The notes: a model not told the origin generated them from the letters alone. A stretch of 32,000 bases of DNA from Zygophlyctis sp. KS116 (GCA_054661495.1 BAAFSQ010000008.1:30001-62000), one strand, 5' to 3'. Counted from the stretch's first letter, positions 4,848-32,000 are shown. Translations and numbers: made by a program.

Positions 4848-5034
4848 TAATCAAAAATCAAAATCAAGTTGTAATGAGATGAAGAGTCTCCGCCAAACAG
4901 TCAAGATCAACTCTTGACATTGATGGTAATAATAGCATAAGTCCATTATGTTGATTTTACTAGAAGCGATTATTTCTATATCAATTAGATCATGAGTAAT
5001 CTGATGGATTATTTCATGATTGTGGCACCTGAAA

Positions 5035-6711
5035 ATGATCCGATGTTGGGTTAGACGACCAACGGTCCAAGTCTCTAATAGAATACAGAAAGCTAATTCA
5101 TCAAGCTTTTATATCTTGCAAGAGTTAGGACCAGCTGGATTTCTTTTAAAGTCGGGAAATCAAAAGTGGAAAGTCTTGATTGGATCTAATCATTCTTGTA
5201 ATTGCCCGCATTTTCAGACAAAAAGGGACCCATGCATTCATATTGTAACTGAAATGTATTTAAAGAATAGCTATGGGTTTTATTAAAGGTTTTTCAAATT
5301 TCAGCAGATTCTGAACTAATATTTCAGTCTGGACTGATAGAGCGGGAAATTACTGAAATTATCCAAGAACGAGGAAAAGTAATTATAATACTCTCACAAT
5401 TCAGATAATTCAAATCAATTCAGTACCAGTAGAAAAAATTGGTCAAAATGAAATCGTTGATGTGGATCAAGGCTTAGTCGCAAGACCAATTACTGAATCT
5501 GATATTTGTCCGATCTGCCAGGAATCGCTACAATCTTCAAACTTGACTCTGACGCATTGCCGTCTGGGTTGTGGAAATAATATTCATCTCAAATGTATAA
5601 AAGTTCTCATGGAACATCAAATAGGATCAATGGGGTTTCAAATGGTCAAATGCCCATTATGTAGATGCGATTTTAATACGGTAGAGGGACTTAAAATTGA
5701 AATTCAAAATTCTTGTACCTCTCAAAAGAAAAGTTACAGACAACCAATCCAGTATGGAGTTTCTTGCAGTAATTGCAAGAAAGATCCGATTATTGGAAAA
5801 TATCATAAATGTAATGCTTGCAAGAATTTATATTTATGTGATGATTGTTTTATAAATGGCTCTCATGATCAACACACTTTTCAAAATAGACTATTTAGGA
5901 ATAGCAAATGGATACCATCTTCAAGAAATGTGGCACCGGTACTACCTTCGGGATTCATCAATGAATTGCAAAATAGAGATATTACAGATGAAGATTATCA
6001 GACTCTGATTTTATTAGACTCAGGTCCCTCCAAACAAGCATCTATACCTCTTCATATTGTAAACTCTTTTCCTTTATCAAAATACTCGAGTACTAAGTCA
6101 GGTAAAGGAGAAAGATGCAAGATTTGTGGCGACTTGTACAATGTAGGAGTAATGACGAGGAAAATTCCATGGTAGATTTTAAATCCTTATAATTATTAGT
6201 TCGCATTCATTTCATCAGAGCTGCATAGGTATTATATTTGTCTAACGATATAGATCGATGGCTACTAAATCAACGAACCACATGTCCTACATGTGGTCTG
6301 GCTGCTTATTCGGCAATTGACGAGGAAAGTGAAGAATGTAAAGAAGAAGCTATGTTTATAGCAAAACATTACGAGAACAAAACATTAAAGAAGGCCGTTA
6401 AAGAAGAAAAAACTTTTGTAGTACCTCAGAATTTCATGGAAATTATTGGGACTGGAGCATCAAAAGTTGACAAATGCTTTGAAAGCTTGTCTTTGCAACC
6501 AAGAAAAAATTCATATGATAGCTGTTTTGGCTCAAATAAGACTATTGGTTGGCCAAAGATTTCATCGAGGCGGTCTACATTACATGAAAAAAAATCAAAA
6601 GGAAAAGAATCACTAGAATCCTTTATTCTGGTTCAAAGTATATCGCCTCTTCTAACCTTTTCATCTTCAAATATGAATAGGCGAATTAATGTTGTAAACA
6701 AAGATAGTTAA
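5035..6711 (+). CDS. ZSWIM2: ZSWIM2/MEX-like E3 ubiquitin ligase (SWIM-RING-ZZ-RING-H2), ~523 aa (introns 5245-5270, 5379-5404, 6172-6199, 6229-6253)
   Basis: YILQELGPAGFLL, SWIM finger HSCNCPHF..PCIHILWVLLK, GLIEREI, RING CPICQE..HCRLGCGNNIHLKC..CPLCR, ZZ finger CSNC..KCNAC..LCDDC, and RING-H2 CKIC..IPCSHSFHQSCIDRWL..CPTC (which needs the 29-nt micro-exon 6200-6228). Confidence 0.85.
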
Positions 6712-6750
6712 ATTTCGGAAATGCTTTGCAATTATTTGCTGCCATGATGA

Positions 6751-8802
6751 TTATTTGCGATTCGTCAATTGTTTTAGATTGATTTTTGAGTTTGAATCTG
6801 TCTTTAAATTTTGATTTGAATCTACTACCATTCTCTGTGTTTCTATATTTTGCGACTTGATTGCACTTGATTTTAAAAGTAGACAAAACCTTTTATATGG
6901 GTCTTTTTCCATTAGCCCTGTTATATGAGATACTGCTAAACTGTATATTTGATAGTGGGCTGGCTCCAATTGTTGATGACCTTTGAACAACGGTTCGAAT
7001 AGTTCGATGAGATTATTTCTAATCGAAGAAATGATATTGATTTCAGAAGGGGCACCATCTCTGATATAATCTTTATATATCTGCTTAGCCAACTTATCAA
7101 AATCTTTCAGCACAACTTTTTGCTCCAAATTCCTGCAAGCAAGAATAAAATTCAGATTTTCTTGAGAAAATTCATTTTTGAGGTACTTATGAAACTCTGT
7201 CAATCCTTTCGGATCTTGCAATAAATAATAAATTCCTGTTGTCCAGCATTGAATTTCTTCTGGGGATATTCTACATATAATTATTTTACTTCATCTTACG
7301 CATCGTTTTCCCCAACGGGTTTATCGCCTGATATCCATGGATTTGAAGCAGAATTCCCAGTTAATAAAGCATCAACACAAGAGACTGCTAAGCAGTGATC
7401 TTTTATACTAAAATTAGCCCATTTTCTATCAAAATTACTATTTGCAGGCTTTTGACATTTTCAATCTTGTTAACTTTGGCATTTCTACCTGCTTTATATT
7501 TACGATAGCTATTTTCCGTTTTTTCACCAAATTCGATCCTTGGTTGAGAAAATCATAAGAATCTGGCTAAATAATATCAGATTTAATATGCTAATTACAG
7601 AGGGTCGATAAACTCTCCAGAACGTTTGCTGCTGCAGCTTTAACACATTAACGTGATCTTTATCTCCTTTCTTAAATAATGCAGTATCTTTTTGAGCTAG
7701 AGTCTCTATTTCAATCCAAGACCTAGAGAAGGATTTCTTGAATTTTTCAAGTATTTTGAGTTCATAATCCTGCAATTTAAACTTATTGCTGTTGACTCTC
7801 CTTACAAGATACCGTGCATAATCTATTCGATAAGATACAATATTTGTAATTACCGAAATCTGAAGGAACACCAGCTGCAATTGGAATCAAATATGGGGCT
7901 TGTAAAATGTAAATTGAATCGTCTGCTACAAATCTTGTGCAAGTTTTTTCCGATGGCACAATAAATCCCATGAAAAACAGTATGTTACAGATATTAGTAG
8001 CATCAGTACTATCAAAATCATTCAAATCTTTGCCAAGAAAAGACATAAAATCATCTTCATTAGAATCAAAGTTGTCAAAAATCCACTTATAAAGGTCTTG
8101 TCCTAAAGATTAAGATGATAAATTACCTAGAAAAGAATTTTTTGGATTTGTATTTGCTTTTACAATTCCAACTTCAGGATCATTCATCATGAGATACAGC
8201 CCAGTCAATTTCTTGATACGTTTTTTTGTTCCATTTGAATAATTACCTTCAACGTAATCGAAAGAAAAAAATAAATCAGAGTCTTTATCATCTTGAAGTG
8301 ACTTTGTTGAATCTGTCATGAATAATCTCATTGGTTTCTTAATATAGCTCCATATTCGCTTGGGCTTTTTCAATTTGGGTTCATCTTTAATACGTTTGGA
8401 AATTTCCCCCGAATAATCAAGGATACCAGATCTGTTTGATCTAGCTTTTTGTGCATCGAATTCATCTGTTAGATATTGAGCTTCGCTTGTATCTTCCGCG
8501 AATGAATCAATATCTTCTTGTGAAGAGGAGCTCTCGGACAAGTTCGAAGATACCACTGACATTGAAGATAATGAAGAATTTTGGTTCTCTTTTTGAACAT
8601 TTACTAGCTGATTACAAGAAAGGTTTTTGTATGTCTTGTTTAATTCACCAGCAGGCTTGTCAACTTCGACTTGAGTTATATTGGACAATGATCGAGGAGA
8701 TGTAGAATTCGTAGAAATGAGCTTTTCAGAGAGCTCTGGCTTCAAGTTATTTCTCCTTTGTTTTGCCAGAGCTGGAGATGGAGCTATATTTATTTCGGAC
8801 AT
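6751..8802 (-). CDS. R7-family regulator of G-protein signalling (DEP-DHEX-GGL-RGS), paralogue A, ~634 aa (introns 8103-8126, 7823-7853, 7567-7598, 7408-7438, 7271-7299)
   Basis: The spliced product has DEP (SFLGQDLYKWI..LFFMGFIVP), DHEX (DYARYLVRR; QQQTFWRVYRPSPD), a G-gamma-like domain (RLKMSKACKYIKDHC..DALL..SNPWISGD) and an RGS box (LLQDPKGLTEFHKYLKNEFSQENLNF..EINI..MEKDPYKRF). Confidence 0.88.
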
Positions 8803-8900
8803 GTCAAAATTGAAAGAAATCTCCGGAAAAATCCGATTATCAAATGTTCATTTTATAATCGAAATAAAACGAAATCCACCAATGATCAATTCGCAACTTA

Positions 8901-11229
8901 TCATGCATTATTAGAAAATAATTCCTGCTTGACAAATCTAGCATATGAATCCTTCTCAATCAGTTTCAATATATGATCTTCTGCCCGATTGAATAAATCA
9001 GTCTGTTCCGGAAGCAGTGATTTCTTATTTTTGAAAAGTGGTATAAATATGCCATGCAATTCTTTTTTGATATTAGATCCAATATTTATTTCTGCCGTCG
9101 CTCCTTGCTTTACAAACTCCAGGTAAATATGCTTTGCTTTTCTATCAAATACTTGCATAGTTGTCGACTTTTGAAGTTCTCTGCAAGCGCTAATAAATTT
9201 GAGATTTTCTTCAGAAAACTCCTTTTTGCTAAATTCCCAAAGAAGATCTACTCCTCTTTTATCCATCAAGAGGAAATTTAGACCAGATTTCCAGTATTTG
9301 ATTTCATTGACTGTTATTGGCCTTACGTTTACTACGTATAAAAATACCTATTAGGATCCCAAGCTGATTCATCTTCTGATATCCATGGATTAGATGGACA
9401 GGGATCAAATAGAAATGGATCAAGAAGGGAAGTCGTACTACAGTGTTCAATCAAACTAAATGTGAGAGTTATAAAAAATACGATGAGGATTCAACTGACA
9501 ATTTTGTAACCTTGAGAGCTAGCAAGTCCTTAAGCTCAAAAATCTTTCTTTGACTCCAACTGTGTAGAGAATCAGGATTATTTGTTAAAGATTGCTATTT
9601 GATTATATTTATCAGTTTTACCTCATATTCTACATCTGTTAGCCTTTGCTTCCTTAAAAAATCTGCTTCTTCATCCAAAAAATGTTCACAAGAATCCGGC
9701 TAATTGTAAAAAATATTTCAAATTTACTGCTGAACGTTGTACACACCAAAATCTATGTTCCTGTAACTTAAAGATTCTAGCTGTAACTTTTGACTGCTTT
9801 GCTAAAAAGGAAATATCAAGATCAACTTGTTTTTCAATTTTTCCCCATTCTCTGTCAAACAATCTTCGAAGCATCTCTAAATTTGTATTTTCCCAAGGAA
9901 ACAGCTTATATTTACTGCTTGGAAAATAGGATCTTCGAAGTAAATATCTAGCATAGTCTGAATGCGAAGGAGTTCCAAATTCACTAGGTAAAAAGAATGG
10001 AGCTTGAAATATATACGGCTTGTCACCGTCTGTAAAAACCAGACTTCTATCAACAGAAACTATAAATCCCAAATGAAAAAGTAATCTACAAACTGTCAAT
10101 GCATCCAATACAGTATCATCATAAAAATTCCCTTTAGAAACCTTTTCAATTTTTCTTTGAGCCCAAAGAATTAATCCACTTCCTAAAAATTATTTAATTG
10201 ATTTAAAATACCTGTAAACCAAGTTTTCAAGTATCTTGTATTTGATACCTTTCCAGAAGTGTATTTGACACCATTTTCAGAGTCTTTTATTTCATTGTAA
10301 ACATTTTTCAAGATCTTTAGTCTTTTTATAGTCCCTAAAGAGTATGATTTTTCAGTATAATTCTGTAGATTTGGAATAATTGGAGTCCAATTCACTTCAG
10401 AATGAATCGAATCTACATTTTTCTTAATTTCCAAGATTGATTTAACTACATTTTCTGAATTTTTTGTAAATAATTTTTGAAATAGTCCTTTTTTAGTCTT
10501 TGGCTGATCTCCATTTTCTTTTTTATGATTTGAGCCTATTGAAGTATCGTTTAATCCTAGAATACTTCGTGATCCTCTCATTGAATCGTTTATTGCCATA
10601 ATACTTCGTGATCCTCTCATTGAATCATTTATTGCCATAATACTCCGTGATCCCTTTCTAGAATCCTGATTCACTCTAGATTTATGTGTCATTGAAATAA
10701 GATCATCTACTGCCTGTGCATCTTCATCCTTGATCAGATCATCTGATCCTAATAGTAATGTATCTGTACTCTCTGTATCCATTTCACGAGATCTATTATG
10801 AATAATTTTATCCATGATAATACTTCCACGAACATGATTAAATTCAACAGGAGACGTAATATCACCAATCAGTACTGCTACACTTGTATGAATTTTTTGA
10901 ATTTTATTGTCCAAAGGCTTAATAAACTCCTTTCTACTGTTATTACCAGGAACCATATTTAATTTAGCTAGTGCTTTTTGTATCATATCATCATTTGACC
11001 GAATTGACACATTTCTATTTTTAATTTCTTGAATAGACTGATCTATAATATCATCGACTGAATGATAAAGTCTTGGCTCTTCAGAGTTTCTGATACTCTG
11101 TCTTGAAATTCTAACTTGTTGTCTATCAACTAATTCATTGCTAGAGAGAGAAGATATATTTGGAGTAGATACACAGACTCCCTGTCCGTCTATATCATTT
11201 TCATCATTTTTAGAGTAATTATTGTCCAT
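8901..11229 (-). CDS. R7-family regulator of G-protein signalling (DEP-DHEX-GGL-RGS), paralogue B, ~730 aa (introns 10183-10211, 9700-9727, 9595-9621, 9456-9481, 9322-9347)
   Basis: The spliced product has DEP (WFTGSGLILWA..LFHLGFIVS), DHEX (DYARYLLRR; QEHRFWCVQRSAPD), GGL (KLSVESSSLIEHC..LDPFLFDPCPSNPWISED) and an RGS box (EFSKKEFSEENLKF..EINI..IEKDSYARF). Confidence 0.88.
10561..10653. repeat. 39-bp coding tandem repeat (about 2.4 copies; 13-aa unit GSRSIMAINDSMR)
   Basis: AATACTTCGTGATCCTCTCATTGAATCGTTTATTGCCAT at 10561-10599, a near-identical copy at 10600-10638, and a partial copy at 10639-10653. Confidence 0.9.
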
Positions 11230-11251
11230 TTAATAAACTCCTTTTCTGTAT

Positions 11252-11259
11252 TGACGTCA
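11252..11259. promoter_or_regulatory. Palindromic CRE/ATF-type element TGACGTCA in the 51-bp RGS-B/CatSper divergent spacer
   Basis: Exact match to the bZIP CREB/ATF consensus, centred between the divergent ATGs at 11229 and 11281. Function is inferred only. Confidence 0.45.
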
Positions 11260-11280
11260 TTACCAATTAGTCCGTCCGCG

Positions 11281-12503
11281 ATGTCCATGCATGGCAGCAA
11301 TCCAGAGTTTCATGATCCACTTGAGGAATCTAATAGACAGAATAGTATAGGAGAGTATGAGTCAAGTACATTATCATTGTCTCACAAGGTTCTACAAGGC
11401 GCATCGACTACTCACAAGACAGTCTTTGCTATTGTGGAATCTAGTACATTCAACTATTTTATATTGACAATAATTATAGTAAATGCATTAATACTGGGAC
11501 TAGAAACTAATATTAATATTATGAAATGGTATAGTTGGTATTTTCTGTTATTGGAGAATGTATTTCTGGGGATATATTTATTTGAACTTGGAGCTAAAGT
11601 ATACAGTTTAAGAATGGAATACTTCAAGTCAAGTTGGAATATTTTTGATTTAATTGTTATTTTATCATCTTTAATTGCATGGATAGTCAAGGAAACAGTT
11701 GATTTGACTGTTGGAGTCTCAAAGTTGTGTAGTATAATTCGTGTCTTTAGAGCAGTTCGAATTATTAGATTCTTAAAGGAACTCAAGGATGTAAATTATC
11801 TCAAATCACTTCAACTTATTATTGAAACAATATTTACTTCATTTCCAACAATTGGAACAATTGGAGTTTTAGCAGGTGTTTTCTTATACGTGTGCGCTGT
11901 TGCATCAGTTATTTTATTTGGAGATATAAATCCATATAAATTTGGATCAGTTGGAAAATCGGTAGTTGCATTATTTGAAGTGATTACTCTAGATAGATGG
12001 TATTTTATGATTTTAAAAAAAACAGGGCTGAAATATATACTCATAATACAGATTATAAAAGTATTTGGATCTTGGGATTCGTTATAATCATTTTTGAGAC
12101 TTTTGTCTTTGAAAAGTAATCTTTTAAAATTTAAATTTATAGTCTATTTGTGGCAGTTATTGTCAATAATCTAAAAGGATCTAGAGAATTAATTGAATTA
12201 AGAAAGAAAAAGAGACACTCTAAATCTTTAAAACTCAAGGGAAATGATCGGGCTGCTTCTAAAGGTTCACTCGGACGAGATAAATTAGAGACTGAAGGAC
12301 TGGGAAATTTATTTGAACAGCAACACGGTATAGATGATTACTATCCTCCATATTTATCTAATCGTTTAAAAGAACTGCTATCATCGTATTATATGAATTT
12401 AGCTTCAATTGATCATGCTCAGGAATCTTATCAAAGACAACAAAAAGTTTTGGATGATCTTTTAGATCTTGGTATTAATTATCAAAATAAAGAATTTGAT
12501 TAG
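11281..12503 (+). CDS. CatSper-family single-domain voltage-gated Ca2+ channel alpha subunit (most like CatSper1), ~389 aa (introns 12000-12025, 12116-12142)
   Basis: 6-TM ion-transport domain: S1 FNYFILTIIIVNALILGLET, S3 WNIFDLIVI, S4 IRVFRAVRIIRFLK, pore FEVITLDRW, S6 NLFVAVIVNNL. The C-terminal coiled coil ELLSSYYMNLASIDHAQESYQRQQKVLDDLLD resembles the CatSper1 tail as I remember it. Confidence 0.8.
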
Positions 12504-12572
12504 TTTTATATTTTTTATACTACAAAATAGCAAAAAGAATTGTATTATGCATTTTCAATTGGATAGTTAAAT

Positions 12573-13253
12573 TTACCATTCAAATTCACCCGAAGACTTA
12601 CCATTAAATTTGAAAATTACCTTGTTAAAAAGATGGTCTTTTCCATTAACATTTATTACACCATCCTTGAAAATGCATTTCCATTTATTCTTGACTCTGC
12701 TTACTTTTTCATACTGACACAGCATTAAATTTGATGTTTCTGCATCTGCATCTTCTTCAGATTCATCCAAATCTGAATTTATATTATCATCATCATCCAA
12801 GTCTTCCTCTAAATCATCTTCATCATCAGCTCCATCGTTTTGTTGTACTCTTTTCAATCGATTAAACAATTGTTCATCTATAGACTTTGAAGACTATTAA
12901 AAATTAAGAATTATAGAATACAATTTGAGTATGTTCATCATTAGATCCGTCGTTTTGTGAGACCTGATATCCTAAAAATTACAAATATGACTTACCAGTT
13001 TCATTTGGGGGAAGAAACGGTCGACCGTGCTCATCAACAGATGGCAGTACTTTCATACCAGAGAGTTTATGCTCCCAATTCTAGTTTCAGTTGATGCAAA
13101 ACTCACTTGTTGCAGTTCAATTAGAATATTCTCATCAATACCCAATTCTGCAAAGTGCCGATGGGATTTCTCAATAACATCTTCAATGATCCATTTATAA
13201 ACTGATGGCTAGCGTTAAATTTCAAATAAACTTACTACGACTGTATTTGACAT
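12573..13253 (-). CDS. TOA1: Transcription factor IIA large subunit, ~183 aa (introns 13209-13235, 13081-13106, 12972-12995, 12894-12921, 12597-12620)
   Basis: N-terminal MSNTVVPSVYKWIIEDVI..GIDENILIELQQNWEHKL, QNDG motifs, an acidic tract INSDLD, and C-terminal NLMLCQYEKVSRVKNKWKC..GKDHLFNKSSGEFEW. Confidence 0.92.
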
Positions 13254-25640: not shown

Positions 25641-28600
25641 TTTAATCCTAACGCTATTTCACGAAGAGTTTTCATCTTGTTGTGAGGAAAGAAGCTAAGG
25701 AAATTGAAAAATATTAACCTCTATGCTTTAAATTAATTTAACATACCCATGAATTAGGAACTTGAAATTGACCGTCTGAATTCAGACGTGTCAAGAATAA
25801 GACACTAGAATTAAAATTTAAAATATTACCTAAATAATAATGTTGCAAGTGATAAGTAATTCTCTCCGTGTTCCCTTGTGCCATAGTGTATTAATTGATC
25901 CACCAAATAAATATATTGAAATGAATAGTCATCTGCTCTGCTGATCATCATGTTCTAAATTTATTATTTTGGAAACATTACATTTTCTTCCATTTCAATT
26001 AGAGGCATTTCTTTTACTAGAAAATTATATATAGATAACTCTAATCGATCAAAAGAGAGACGAGATCCAGAAGCATACTTCAAATTAGAGTAAATAATTT
26101 ACATGAAACTGTTCAAGACTACCAAGACAAAGTTTGATAGGAATCCAGCGTTTTTCTTGAGGTCTCCTCCTGTTATAGATGGTGATATATTCCAGAATGT
26201 AGCGTTCCTATATTGTTATTCATTTCGAAATCATACCTTTCGTAGGTATTCGATATGCTCCATTAAGAGATCACGTCGAGGAACAATACGAAGCTGTATA
26301 GACGCCTCTGGTTGAATTAAAAACGTCGGGTTTAGACTGCTACATTCTCCGTCCAAATTAAGAACTGAAAAGTATACAGATTCATTAATCACCAAACATT
26401 CTAATTCATCTCCCAAAAGATTACCAATGGAAAGCAAATCTTTACTGTCTTGCAGAAAGCTGAGCTGCCATAGCTCACCGTTTTCAGGATAATAAGCGTT
26501 ATTCTCTAAAGTACCATTAAAAGTGAATTCATGCACAGAAAGACACATCTGAGGCTGTCTACAAGCCGCCTTAAATTGAACCACCTTGGAAAAATCTTTA
26601 ACTAAACGGCAATTAATCATGATCTCTGCAAGTTTCCAGATAGGCTTACTCGCTTCATCTAAAGTCATTTGAGATAATGGTTTTGATAATGGCTTGACCT
26701 GTTTCGGGGGACAAAAGCGAACATAAACCCTCACGCTGGACTCCGCATCTACAACCAAATATCTGAAGAGTTTAGCAGTAGTTCTTGATAGCTATATGTT
26801 TTAAAAAATATTATTTACCGAAAATATAATTTCACCATCACCTGGATATTCTAAAGTAGTATTTAAAACAAATTCTAAAGGAACTGATTCATGGTTTTGA
26901 ATAATCAAGCTCTTTGCAGAATCAGTTTCGTCAAAGTACACATCTTCAATCTCTATCAGACTAATTTCCGAACTGAGACCACTAACATAAACGTCAAACG
27001 CATGATTTGGAGCCTGAGAATCGGAAGGAGTAGCTGTTTCTACAGCAGTTCTCTTAAAATTATGTGAAGCCACCACATCCATAACAACTTTTATAATCTT
27101 GCAATCCTCAGCATTCTCCATATTTTCCAATAACACATATGTTGAATAAGATCCTCTCACACTAGGAATCACACTAATGTTAATTATGTGGGTTTCTTTT
27201 TCATTTGTATTAGTTCCAGGGAATCCTTCAAAAACTCCATTACTTTGGCTAAAATTGAGCCAAGATATGTCTTTTTCAAGTATTCGAATACGGTATGCTA
27301 TTCGTTCCCTTGTCGGATTTTCAAGGTAAAGCTTTCTGATTAATGAGTTTAGACCAACATCCTGTTGGCCCAATTCTAATAAGAAAAATCCCCCTGCTTT
27401 CAAAATCCCACCTGACACAGGGTCAGATATTCGCTTGCAACCGCGAACAGCAATTATCGGAGGGCGCTTAGTAGATATGTTTGCAGGCGAAATATTCGCG
27501 GCATTTCTATCAGAAGTGCGTCCTTGACTTGAGGTTATCATTAAATTCTCGCTTGGATCAGAGTCCCTCATATTCAAGTCAGTGTTGGAAGAATATTGAG
27601 AGCCGACTCTAGATAAATTCTTTACTGCATCGAGATTTGTCCCTATATTCGGTGGCAGTATCTCTTCTATTCCAATAGCGATGATTTTTGGACCCAGCTG
27701 TATAGAATTTATGTCCATGATTTGAATTCTGATATCCTCTGACAGACCATCTCTTTTCGTGTCTAGGAAATCGACACGAAATGCTTGGGAGGAGTTGGGG
27801 GCTATTGATACCATCATATTATCACTTATTCCGATGATTTGGATCACAGACATTGAACTTGATGAAATTTCGACTGGAAGTTCAATTTTGATCTTAAGCT
27901 CTAGAGTTGAGAATGTAGACAGATTAGTGATTGTAAATTGTTCGGATTGAGCAATGTTTGGTGTTACCGCAGAATTATCCCAAACAGGGAAAGTTTGGAA
28001 ACGAATGTTTTCTGTAGATAGTTCAAATTGTGATTTTTCAACGAAAGAACCATATATAGGGATAGACTCTGCTATTTGCTTTTCGTCATAGACCATACCA
28101 TCGAACGTAGATACTTGTAAAGCTCCGAATGTAATTACAGACTTTGAAAATATCCAGCTGCATCTAGTATCATTCTTTGACAGTACTAAATTAGGCTTCA
28201 ATGTGGCCTTAATTTTGATTTCATCGCCTCTATTAGGGGATATTGTGATCGGACCGTTTACTTGCGTGTTTGAAGATCTAATCAGAATGTTAAATTCCAG
28301 GATATCAACCAACTCTGACGAAATTAAAGGCGTAAATTCGACCTTCTTCTCTTGAATTGAAAGATTTGTCACACAGAAACAAAAATCAGTGGCAGCAGCA
28401 GATGGCACCAAGGGATATGAAATTGGATCGAGAGATATCACATTATTGTGCAACCTTTCGATACGAATTTCTGGTATTGTTAGAACTGCTTTTATGCACA
28501 CTCGAAGATTATTAGCAGGATTAAATAAGTTGGTTATTGATATATTGAATATTTTCTCCCCGATCGATAAATCTTCTATAAGTCTTGGTTGAAGCAAGCC

Positions 28601-31600
28601 ATGATAAGAAAGAGACTCAAAAGGTTCGATCTGAGCCTGCTCGGGATCAAAGACTTTCCCGTCAGAATCATGAATGAGAATACATGATGGGTAAGAGATA
28701 CTGTAACAAAATGGTATTTCAGAAGAATTAGAAATCTTGAATGTGAAATATGACGGCTCCCAGGAATTAAAATGACCAATTTGACCAAGATCGATGTCAC
28801 ATTTGTCCAGAACTCCTATTGATTCACAGTAGCCTATATGGAGTTTTAATACCTGCAATGTATCGTTTTTTGTTGTTTCAAAAGTCAAGATTCCAGAGCT
28901 TTTAATCAATTGAGATGAATCAACCACTTCATCTGCAAAAATTGGTGAAGGGATATCAACGATAGCAATCGCCGCTTGATGTGGGTGAAGCATCAGACCA
29001 TATCCACAGATTACCAATTGATTTCTTGATGAAAAGGAAACATTCGGATCACAATGTTCCATTATGAATCCAGCCCCAGGTGCAACCAGCCATGTTAAAT
29101 TTAAAACAAGACTACTTTTGGGGTATAATTCCACTAATTCTTCTGATTTATTGTGAATTTTTAACTGATATCCCTGTTCGCATGATGCTGAGCTGATGAT
29201 TTCAAATTTCGTTGGATCACTGCTATTTGCGGATATATAAACGCTTTTCCAATCTAATACATCAGGTATTGGAGCGTCCACACAACTTACACCCAAAACA
29301 TTAGGATCAACAAACAGCATTACATCAACAGACAATTGCTGAACAGAGTTGTAGACATTATCAACCCTTATAAAATCTTTGAGTAGGCCATATTTCACGG
29401 CTTTCACTTTAACTCTTACTTTGTAGGAGTCCATATTCATTGAATCGGCAGGATCCAATTTTCCTTCGAGCAGATTGGTGCTAATCCATGAATTCATATT
29501 TACTAAACGAAAATGCATAGGCAAGTGAGGTGTCTTGTTGAAGATGATCAACTCTTCTTCAAACTCCTTCTGAAGTTGTTGAGTTGTTCCTAGATAAATT
29601 GTTGTTCTCTTAATTTCGATCAAACTTTGACCCGTAACCGCTTGAAATTTGACCACATGTGTTCCAACAATTACTGAAGACGGATCTTCATCATCTCGAA
29701 TATGAAACTTCAGACCTCCAATTAAGTTGCGAACCTCGGACACAGATATCGGATTTTGAGCTAAATTATTTTTCTTTACATTCGTACCCCCTCCATAAGG
29801 CTGAACAACCAAATATAAAATTTTAGAGTCACCCACAGATAACGAAAAGCTATCTATTAGAACCTCTAATGCCTCATCGAAAAATACCAAAAATTGCTGG
29901 GCTAAATTTGAAGTGATGGTTATGTAGAGAGCTTGATCTGTTATATTAGCAACCTTGATCGGAAAAGCCTGAGTATATTTTTTACTAGGATCAATAAAGC
30001 AATAACCAAAATTAATATCATCCACTAGAGTGTCCGAGATATCAGTACAGCGAAGATAACCCGATAATACCCCATAAAATTCAAAATTAATTTGAACCTG
30101 CGTTCGATCTTCTGTACATTCAATAAAAAGGGAGTGATATTGTTTTCCTTTTTGATTTGGAAGCAAGTCCACCATAATCTTAAGAGAGGACTGCGGAGCA
30201 ATTGATCCATATTCAGTTTTGAATGTAAAAATACTAGGCGTATCAGGCTTTAAAACTTTAAAACTTTTTTCTATCACTCCATCATTGCGGATGGTAAAGT
30301 AGCATTGTCTAAGTGTATTGATTTCGAGCTTTCCAAGATTGATGACGGAAAGATCTGCTGCAAAAGATCCTACAGGAGAATTCAAAGAAGGAATATCATC
30401 TATCTTACTAGGAGCTGACATTGATGGAGTGGTAGAATCTTTAAGATTTGCTACTGAAGGTTCATTGCCTTGAGATAATAACATATGATAGTTGAAATGA
30501 TCAAAACACACTACGCAATGAAAACTGACCTTTTTAATCAAATCTGAATTCTTATATTCTTGTACATAAATTGTTCCAGAGATATTTTTTGACGGATGAG
30601 GAGATTCCTAGTAACGTCAAAAATATTATTAATACCGAAGAAATCAATCCGCTATTTATAGCTCTAAATGATACCAGGACTGTTCGAATAGACCTCGGTT
30701 GAATCGAGAAAATAATGCTAGAGTTCGTCTTTTTTGTCCTGAAAGAGTTGATCCTACTTTCTATCCGGAGGCTTGATGATTGATCCGATCCTGCCGGCAA
30801 ATGAGTGTAGTCAAATTCATAATCATCTCCTACCAATCCACTCCTCAATCTGTCAATTTTGTCAGTAATCTTTTTCATCTTGTCTTTGCGCCCCTTCCTT
30901 CGGGCTATCTTAAGTTTTTGTTCCAAATTTTCTATTTGCTCTTCTACCTCTTTTGAAAGTATTGTAAGTTTTCGAAAGGTTTTACTACTTTTGGAGCTAT
31001 TCATTGAGTCCACATTGTCATTTTCTGACATTTCAAACTCGACTTCGCCTTCTAGGCCGCACTCTAACATTTCGGAAGGATTGAACTTGACCTCCATAAG
31101 CCGTGCATGTTTAGAGCTTGAGTTTGAGATGGTAATCTGCTGTACATGTGATGCCTTTTCATTAATCAAACAAACACCAAAATCAATGTCAAGACTTTCG
31201 ATAAAAAATGGAGTCGCCTTTCTCACGTTAGCCTTGATTGTGAGAACTTGATTGAAGTTATTATCGAGAACGTTTTCAATTATAAGTTTTTCATTGAATG
31301 CGCCAGATAGAGATGGCTCAAAAATAAATACTACTTCTTTTTTTCCGTACCCCCTAATGATTCCATTCTTATCATCTCCGAGCATTATATCTCCAGAAGA
31401 TATGGATCCTGATTTTTTTATATTGTAATACAATGGAACTTCAGCGTTGTTTCTGATTAGTATGGTCTTTGAACGTTTTTCATTTTTCTCTACAAGTCCA
31501 AAATTAATATGTTTCTGCCCCAATTCCATTACCGACCTGCAAATAGATGAGCGTATTAACAGTTCGCGAACAGGGATTTCAATTTTTCCAAAATTTGAAA

Positions 31601-32000
31601 CCGATTGCTTTTGTATCGCCTGATCAAACTCTATCAACTTGATAGAAAGTTTGAAATCATGCTTTTTTAACTTACCCTGACAAATAAGAAAAATAAACTA
31701 TACCTGAATATATGGTTTATCCGACCCATCAGGAGTAAAAATTACATAAATATTCTTTTGTGATTCTGGTGCAATTTCCAATGTTGATACCGGTTTCAAA
31801 AGCTGACCTTCTAACGCTTTCTGTAGTTCATGTAGCAGCAGAATCTTCAACAATACTGAACTCGCCTCGAAAAATGCTTTAGGGTATGTGCTGTTAGTAG
31901 CGTTGCCATTGCTGTCCAATAATACAAGTGCTAATTCCAGAGGATCTTTACAGGCCCTATACATTTCTACTAAATCGTCTTCATTCATGTATTCACTACG
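25637..32000 (-). CDS. Large uncharacterised protein with repeated Ig-like (ASH/PapD-like) beta modules; about 2050 codons inside the window, 5' end outside (introns 31677-31703, 30608-30635, 26792-26818, 26208-26236, 26078-26102, 25955-25981, 25805-25829, 25721-25746)
   Basis: Eight 25-29 nt GT-AG introns join four ORFs and five small unannotated exons into one frame ending at TGA 25637-25639. Recurring module starts include INFGLV..ILIRN, IDFGVC..ITISN, INLGKL..FTIRN, INFGYC..IKVAN and IDLGQI..FKISN. Confidence 0.75.

Follow-up and report, generated by a model that had tools for sequence, protein, structure and literature searches.

Tandem R7-type RGS genes beside a CatSper1-type channel gene in a compact zoosporic fungal genome: an adjacency probably inherited within one clade

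The stretch of DNA analyzed here, hereafter the window, covers 32,000 nucleotides of one contig (G000:C8:30001-62000) from the assembly of Zygophlyctis sp. KS116, which amounts to 12.7 Mb in 1175 contigs with ~33% guanine plus cytosine (GC). The subject of this study is a block of four neighboring genes in the window, all of them intact. These are a ZSWIM2-like gene of the SWIM/RING/ZZ kind (5035-6711, plus strand; Pfam), two R7-type RGS genes, RGS-A (6751-8802, minus strand; Pfam and PDB profile search) and RGS-B (8901-11229, minus strand; Pfam and PDB search), and a CatSper1-type channel gene (11281-12503, plus strand; Pfam Ion_trans, PDB and named relatives). The reading favored here, as probable though well short of certain, is that the adjacency of the RGS and CatSper1 genes is micro-synteny inherited within a clade, and that the RGS genes encode general GTPase-activating proteins (GAPs) for G proteins.

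RGS-B and the channel gene are arranged head to head. On the minus strand, the RGS-B start codon ends at 11229; the channel gene has its first ATG at 11281, leaving a divergent spacer of 51 bp (11230-11280, by direct sequence reading). On the other side, 98 bp separate the RGS-B stop (8901) from the RGS-A ATG (8802), and the ZSWIM2-like gene and RGS-A are convergent, with 39 bp between their stops. Two other divergent spacers in the window measure 102 bp (Noc2 and a WD40 gene) and 187 bp (a kinase and the ZSWIM2-like gene). The flanking genes code for a protein kinase, TFIIA, an inositol-polyphosphate kinase (IPK), Noc2, a WD40 protein and a MYST acetyltransferase, and are thus mostly housekeeping genes. 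A sequence-only reading made earlier had described the same four genes, with gaps of 51 and 98 bp, as lying among housekeeping genes; direct reading together with Pfam confirmed the block and both gaps, and the flanks agree with the setting.

Introns at this locus are very small (GT-AG, 26-44 nt; window positions 12000-12025, 12116-12142 and 9600-9720), and they interrupt S6 of the channel as well as the GGL domains of both RGS genes. Domain searches were run on single exons, one at a time. Elsewhere in the window lies a CFAP65-like flagellar gene (26801-31637, minus strand), with two long open frames of 1246 and 361 amino acids and Ig domains of the HYDIN/CFAP65 type, indicating that the organism is flagellated. 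The best named relatives of the window Noc2 were found in the chytrids Rhizophlyctis, Clydaea and Gorgonomyces (33-37% identity), followed by Mortierellomycota; metagenomic proteins were closer (46-96% identity), and the stretch itself is present in freshwater and estuary metagenomes. Judged from its sequence, the host is read as a zoosporic fungus that is uncultured and flagellated, diverged early and has a compact genome.

All parts of RGS-A lie on the minus strand, and consist of the RGS domain exon (6751-7221; Pfam RGS, 65 bits), the C-terminal half of the GGL domain (7299-7460; G-gamma the only Pfam match, E 0.061, model positions 31-63), its N-terminal half (about 7441-7533, read by eye), DHEX (7524-7880; Pfam RGS_DHEX, 44 bits), a DEP-like region (7783-8046) and a poorly conserved N-terminal exon (8110-8802). 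RGS-B, on the same strand, is built alike, with the RGS exon at 8901-9269 (Pfam RGS, 71 bits), the C-terminal half of GGL at 9335-9490 (Pfam G-gamma, E 0.1), micro-exons for further GGL and linker sequence at about 9472-9699, the end of DEP together with DHEX at 9686-10108 (Pfam RGS_DHEX, 42 bits), and the N-terminal exon at 10183-11229. Both genes thereby exceed the Pfam cut-off for RGS_DHEX (22.5 bits). The poorly conserved, 348 amino acid N-terminus of RGS-B also contains a serine/arginine-rich unit of ~13 residues in three tandem copies (about 10500-10640, minus strand). In a related strain from a freshwater metagenome, a 2-bp insertion was seen just behind 8802, the RGS-A start codon, and the start may differ there.

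The DHEX domain is specific to the RGS7 family. When the RGS-B exon at 9686-10108 was compared with the whole PDB, the only matches were RGS7 (residues 88-202, E 5e-14) and RGS9. The DEP domain is split by an intron in the window, and was detected by Pfam in the orthologues of the metagenomic loci L004 (E 2.7e-9) and L001 (E 7e-4). Introns of ~27-44 nt, read from the sequence, obscure the GGL domain. Its C-terminal pieces matched G-gamma as the sole Pfam family, below the cut-off in each case (the L004 piece with E 0.021; model positions 31-67 over the pieces), and a profile of this GGL piece built from five genes (A2), which includes the invariant N-P-W motif, had no PDB matches other than RGS7 (residues 282-317, E 5e-6) and RGS9 (E 7e-4). 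The best PDB matches of the RGS domain were RGS10, RGS2 and RGS18, a result not diagnostic of subfamily on its own. The domain carries an insertion of ~11 residues and, in an alignment to RGS10, retains the G-alpha-contacting asparagine of the N-I/V motif. By the presence of DEP, DHEX, GGL and RGS parts in both genes, RGS-A and RGS-B are assigned to the R7 type, the identity that had been proposed for them, and the DEP/DHEX exon and the GGL profile, with matches to RGS7 and RGS9 only, bear this out.

The two RGS genes are tandem paralogues, since each copy is more similar to its own orthologue in L001 (57-65% identity) than to its sister copy (37-45%). The tandem duplication is found in the window and L001 lineages, and a single copy is present in locus L113. 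The order of domains (DEP, DHEX, GGL, RGS) is that of the animal R7 RGS proteins (RGS6/7/9/11 and EGL-10/EAT-16). Unlike these, the fungal genes have a long N-terminal extension of 230-348 amino acids before DEP, a GGL domain split by introns, the insertion in the RGS domain mentioned above, and an RGS domain that is no nearer to R7 members than to RGS10, RGS2 and RGS18. The RGS7 architecture is on record in holozoans as well as in chytrids (de Mendoza et al. 2014, PMC3971589). The present genes resemble those chytrid genes in that an R7-type RGS occurs in a zoosporic fungus without the holozoan G-beta5 duplication, but differ from them by the tandem copy and by the head-to-head position next to CatSper1, an arrangement absent from that paper.

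In the sequence-only reading, G-beta5 had been named as the obligate partner of the two RGS proteins. The Pfam WD40_Gbeta model identified a single gene above its cut-off in the whole assembly, on contig C312 (356 + 201 bits); the next matches, of at most 82 bits, are ordinary WD40 proteins. The C312 gene is of the G-beta1 type (353 bits to GNB1). GNB5 was absent among its top 60 PDB hits, and G-beta5 was thus not found, although in a draft assembly this does not prove its absence. The host therefore departs from the animal complex of R7 RGS with G-beta5 in showing one G-beta1-type gene only. This negative result agrees with an origin of G-beta5 as a holozoan duplication (PMC3971589), and the fungal R7 RGS proteins presumably pair with the ordinary G-beta.

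The assembly also contains one G-gamma gene and one G-alpha gene above the Pfam cut-off, the latter of the Gi/o/t class. The Gi/o class is the substrate class of animal R7 RGS proteins, and in having a Gi/o-class protein as its only G-alpha the host is like the animal R7 systems. Six RGS-domain loci were detected in the assembly, including RGS-A, RGS-B and one of the sorting-nexin type (PXA, RGS, Nexin_C). RGS-A and RGS-B, the only multidomain G-protein GAPs among them, are therefore the leading GAP candidates for the single G-alpha, and probably serve all heterotrimeric G-protein signaling in the organism; for this reason, dedication to one effector is unlikely. According to what is known of these families, both proteins would speed GTP hydrolysis on the single Gi/o-class G-alpha, and their GGL domains would bind the single G-beta1-type subunit.

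The channel gene comprises three exons on the plus strand (11281-11999, 12026-12115 and 12143-12503), separated by GT-AG introns of 26 and 27 nt. It is intact and codes for a single six-transmembrane repeat, with S6 running over exons 2 and 3; the Ion_trans domain scored 93 bits with Pfam (11251-12087, model positions 2-201). Among the top 60 PDB matches CatSper1 was the only CatSper (9ubw_A, E 2e-22; 7eeb_A, E 8e-21), with a bacterial sodium channel scoring equally (E 1.4e-22). In a library-wide search the best named relatives, from Blastocladiella, Sorochytrium and the brittle star Amphiura, were annotated as CatSper1, and homologues from Allomyces and Thecamonas were also retrieved. The PDB match and the annotated relatives thus point to CatSper1, in agreement with the CatSper identity suggested before. 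A scan of metagenomes, in which one sequence of the query alignment was bacterial-like, returned bacterial sodium channels of ~30% identity and no fungal loci.

The pore motif T-x-D-x-W is present as TLDRW (window 11990-11999). The arginine is common to all members of the clade and to Polyrhizophydium, whereas most CatSper1 relatives have TLDDW; Irineochytrium has TFDLW. In being a single-repeat subunit with a voltage sensor and a pore, the window protein is like the sperm CatSper (mouse, 7EEB) and the orthologues of blastoclads and Thecamonas. It differs from CatSper orthologues by its TLDRW pore and by having no long histidine-rich N-terminus. Cai and Clapham are said to have reported CatSper in zoosporic fungi in 2014. 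The occurrence of CatSper in these fungi is already supported by the CatSper1 names that databases give to blastoclad genes and by PMC13358043. In Irineochytrium annulatum L105 (JADGJL010000256.1) the predicted protein KAJ3193010.1, annotated as "TFIID subunit 5", fuses a TAF5-like gene with a downstream CatSper1-like channel, which makes up residues 643-849.

Other CatSper subunits were sought in the assembly, as the earlier reading had suggested, and three further single-repeat channel genes were detected. The gene on contig C2 matched CatSper2 only, the sole CatSper match of that on C21 was CatSper3, and that on C217 weakly matched CatSper1 and CatSper4. In addition, contig C56 carries CATSPERB_C (E 8e-27 and 1e-5). 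Genes like CatSper2, CatSper3 and CatSper4, together with CatSper-beta, are therefore present elsewhere in the genome, and the host resembles the sperm CatSper complex in having four alpha-type genes and the C-terminal domain of CatSper-beta. It differs from the full sperm set in that the fourth alpha (C217) is weakly assigned, and that the Pfam models for CatSper-gamma and -delta (the beta-propeller models for CATSPERG and CATSPERD), which had no positive control, matched nothing in the genome. From family knowledge, CatSper1 would join the CatSper2-, CatSper3- and CatSper4-like subunits and CatSper-beta to form a flagellar calcium channel.

The ZSWIM2-like gene has at least three exon blocks on the plus strand. 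The first (5035-5286) contains the SWIM domain (Pfam SWIM, 26.2 bits, above the cut-off, at 5020-5286), the second (5462-6175) the RING and ZZ domains (Pfam ZZ, 23.8 bits, above the cut-off), and the third (6238-6711) the end of a second RING-like finger. RING_2 reached 23.5 bits, below its cut-off of 27.3 bits; the second RING-like finger, which spans the junction of exons 2 and 3, was recognized by eye. The nearest ESM Atlas clusters were SWIM/ZZ/RING proteins, among them chordate ZSWIM2, with scores of 0.81-0.85 that serve as leads only. The domain architecture fits the name ZSWIM2 that had been given to the gene, since SWIM, RING, ZZ and a second RING-like finger follow one another as in vertebrate ZSWIM2 (MEX), a likeness short of established orthology. 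In vertebrates ZSWIM2 (MEX) is a testis-enriched SWIM/ZZ/RING E3 ligase, which is uninformative for this fungus. Orthologous pieces of the gene were found in L001, L003, L004 and L113.

An RGS gene with DHEX and the channel gene were found head to head in seven related metagenomic loci, in which CatSper1 was 52-95% identical to that of the window (L003, 95%; L001/L002, 63% by tblastn; L015, 60%; a JGI contig, 57%; L004, 54%; L113, 52%). Wherever the spacer between RGS-B and CatSper1 was readable in this clade, it measured at most ~76 bp. The neighboring genes are conserved as well: L001, L003 and L113 match the window in the order of kinase, ZSWIM2, TFIIA, IPK and Noc2, and the WD40 gene is likewise collinear in the clade. 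Locus L113, a Logan contig of 16.7 kb, differs from the window in its GC content (45%) and has a Noc2 of only 40% identity, but keeps the order Noc2, IPK, CatSper1 (minus), a single R7-RGS (plus) and ZSWIM2 (minus), showing that micro-synteny in the clade is very stable. As the housekeeping flanks are equally collinear, the linkage of RGS and CatSper1 is no stronger than the background micro-synteny. These results are in line with inheritance as the explanation, in which the divergent RGS-B/CatSper1 pair would have stayed together along with its housekeeping neighbors within the clade.

Outside the clade the linkage was not observed. In Irineochytrium annulatum, Allomyces macrogynus, Blastocladiella emersonii and Sorochytrium milnesiophthora, neither annotation nor tblastn revealed RGS, DHEX or ZSWIM2 in the 10 kb to each side of CatSper1, and none of the three was found on L106, a 5.7-kb contig from another metagenomic relative. 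Synteny across zoosporic fungi, which had been put forward as a check on the earlier proposal, was therefore absent in four named genera and in L106, and present in one clade only; a lack of conserved linkage had been named beforehand as refuting the proposal, and the result speaks against a conserved module. The pairing of RGS with CatSper1 is not a conserved feature of zoosporic fungi.

The earlier proposal was that the block forms a co-regulated sensory-motility module of the zoospore. In such a module, a bidirectional promoter would act at zoospore formation, RGS with G-beta would time a chemoreceptor-Gi signal that gates CatSper, and ZSWIM2 would be a third, ubiquitin-dependent part; this is considered improbable. 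Apart from the head-to-head arrangement over 51 bp, it would account for the fact that none of the seven related loci has lost the pair, despite an inversion and a change in GC content, and for the persistence of ZSWIM2 by the pair in L001, L003, L004 and L113. The occurrence of the other CatSper subunits and of a minimal Gi/G-beta/G-gamma set in the genome is also as expected for it. On the other hand, the linkage is absent in the four named fungi and in L106, and the housekeeping flanks are conserved to the same degree in the clade, with no excess for the pair. Moreover, the RGS genes encode the only R7-type GAPs for the only G-alpha, which makes a role restricted to one effector unlikely. 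No paper connecting R7-RGS with CatSper was found in the literature searched, and nothing in the present analysis links the RGS genes specifically to CatSper. With a linkage that is clade-specific and at background level, and with G-beta5 not found, the co-regulated module is unsupported. A version in which an RGS7-type GAP, with an ordinary G-beta as partner, is tied to CatSper1 by a bidirectional promoter of ~50 bp, so that the termination of chemoreceptor-Gi signals and the entry of flagellar calcium would be expressed together and serve one steering pathway, with the ZSWIM2-like protein as a third part, is held to be just as doubtful.

Several observations do weigh against inherited micro-synteny as the whole explanation. 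No lineage of the clade seen has lost the pair, the divergent L113 included. In L004 a single inversion of the RGS-CatSper block has breakpoints that flank the pair exactly, so that the junctions ZSWIM2/RGS and CatSper/TFIIA are broken and the pair survives as a unit, with ZSWIM2 still within one gene of it. Both R7-RGS and CatSper are restricted to flagellated fungal lineages (PMC3971589; PMC13358043). A spacer as short as 51 bp would make the two promoters overlap, favoring co-expression. Finally, the one metatranscriptome that contains any of the stretch (6% of sampled words) yielded only two contigs over 6700-12600, and these fall on RGS-B (9058-9311) and CatSper1 (11355-11568). The inversion is weak evidence, since a break inside a spacer of ~50 bp would harm both genes whatever their function. 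The RNA contigs, which also count in favor of a module, show no splice joints, and one of them extends 42 nt past the RGS exon into the predicted intron; they may derive from carried-over DNA, and are evidence of neither transcription nor co-expression. The gene density of the window, about one gene per 2 kb, corresponds to ~6,000 genes in 12.7 Mb. On this basis, direct adjacency of any of about five CatSper-complex genes to either of two R7-RGS genes would have a probability of ~0.003 by chance, a post hoc figure.

Some of these observations could also be explained if RGS-B and CatSper1 were both zoospore-stage genes, like many genes that disappear together with the flagellum, and rose together while acting in separate pathways, their adjacency persisting because neither gene would come through a break in the spacer intact. 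The small spacer may drive transcription of both genes, divergent spacers of little length recur in this genome (51, 102 and 187 bp), and the pair was never broken, in contrast to the adjoining junctions on either side in L004. The confinement of both families to flagellated fungi is likewise consistent with expression at the same stage. However, the divergent pairs Noc2/WD40 and kinase/ZSWIM2 are conserved equally well, showing that retention needs no co-expression. Co-expression without functional coupling is therefore regarded as rather unlikely, if less so than a true module, and the inheritance of a stable gene order within the clade continues to be preferred.

The spacer contains a perfect CRE-like palindrome (11252-11259), which was weighed as a regulatory element common to both genes. 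One copy is present in the window, where 0.26 would be expected, a count also reached by 24 of 100 shuffled sequences; in the whole genome there are 33 copies, compared with 29 for a control word. The 51-bp spacer aligned well only with the relative of 95% identity, and the palindrome is not conserved in L001. As the motif is neither enriched in the window or genome nor conserved in L001, its role as a shared element was rejected on the present data, and the lack of enrichment is a further point against a module.

What is new at this locus is modest, namely the tandem duplication of an R7-RGS gene, its divergent pairing with CatSper1 throughout a clade, and the presence, in a genome of very small size, of R7 RGS genes for which a G-beta1-type gene is the sole candidate partner. 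RGS7-type proteins without G-beta5 bear on the question of which G-beta was bound by the ancestral GGL domain. The study also documents, for a highly compact fungal genome, a near-complete list of CatSper parts (four alpha-type genes and beta), and a clade-specific arginine in the pore motif of CatSper1. G-protein input to CatSper is disputed for sperm. If the pairing is functional, it would be the first genomic hint of heterotrimeric G-protein signaling feeding into CatSper, and this could be tested in fungal zoospores.

The sequence-only reading had also compared the RGS genes with RGS9 in phototransduction. One weak class-A match was the only G-protein-coupled receptor (GPCR) detected in the genome, and class-C GPCRs gave no match there. 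Two tandem matches to microbial-type rhodopsins were found on contig C71 (25549-28121, minus strand; 72 and 61 bits, open frames of 385 and 334 amino acids), with weaker ones on C38 and C43. The C71 rhodopsins are candidate photoreceptors for zoospore phototaxis. By analogy with Blastocladiella, phototaxis in this fungus would more probably use rhodopsin, cGMP and a cyclic nucleotide-gated channel than a G protein. With microbial-type rhodopsins on C71, a channel with a cyclic nucleotide-binding domain (CNBD) on C221 and one weak class-A GPCR, an RGS9-like role in phototransduction is unlikely, and the analogy was rejected.

The C221 channel (L010, G000:C221:4617-7979) matched Ion_trans; its voltage-sensor-like domain and CNBD were read by eye, and it adjoins an FHA-like open frame. 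Together with the rhodopsins, this channel points to a light pathway that would run through cGMP, as in Blastocladiella. Two other voltage-sensor proteins were noted, both read by eye. One (L009:139-735, G000:C1018) is Hv1-like, with a coiled coil after a stand-alone voltage-sensor domain, and the other (L012:676-1872, G000:C229) has EF-hands before its voltage-sensor domain.

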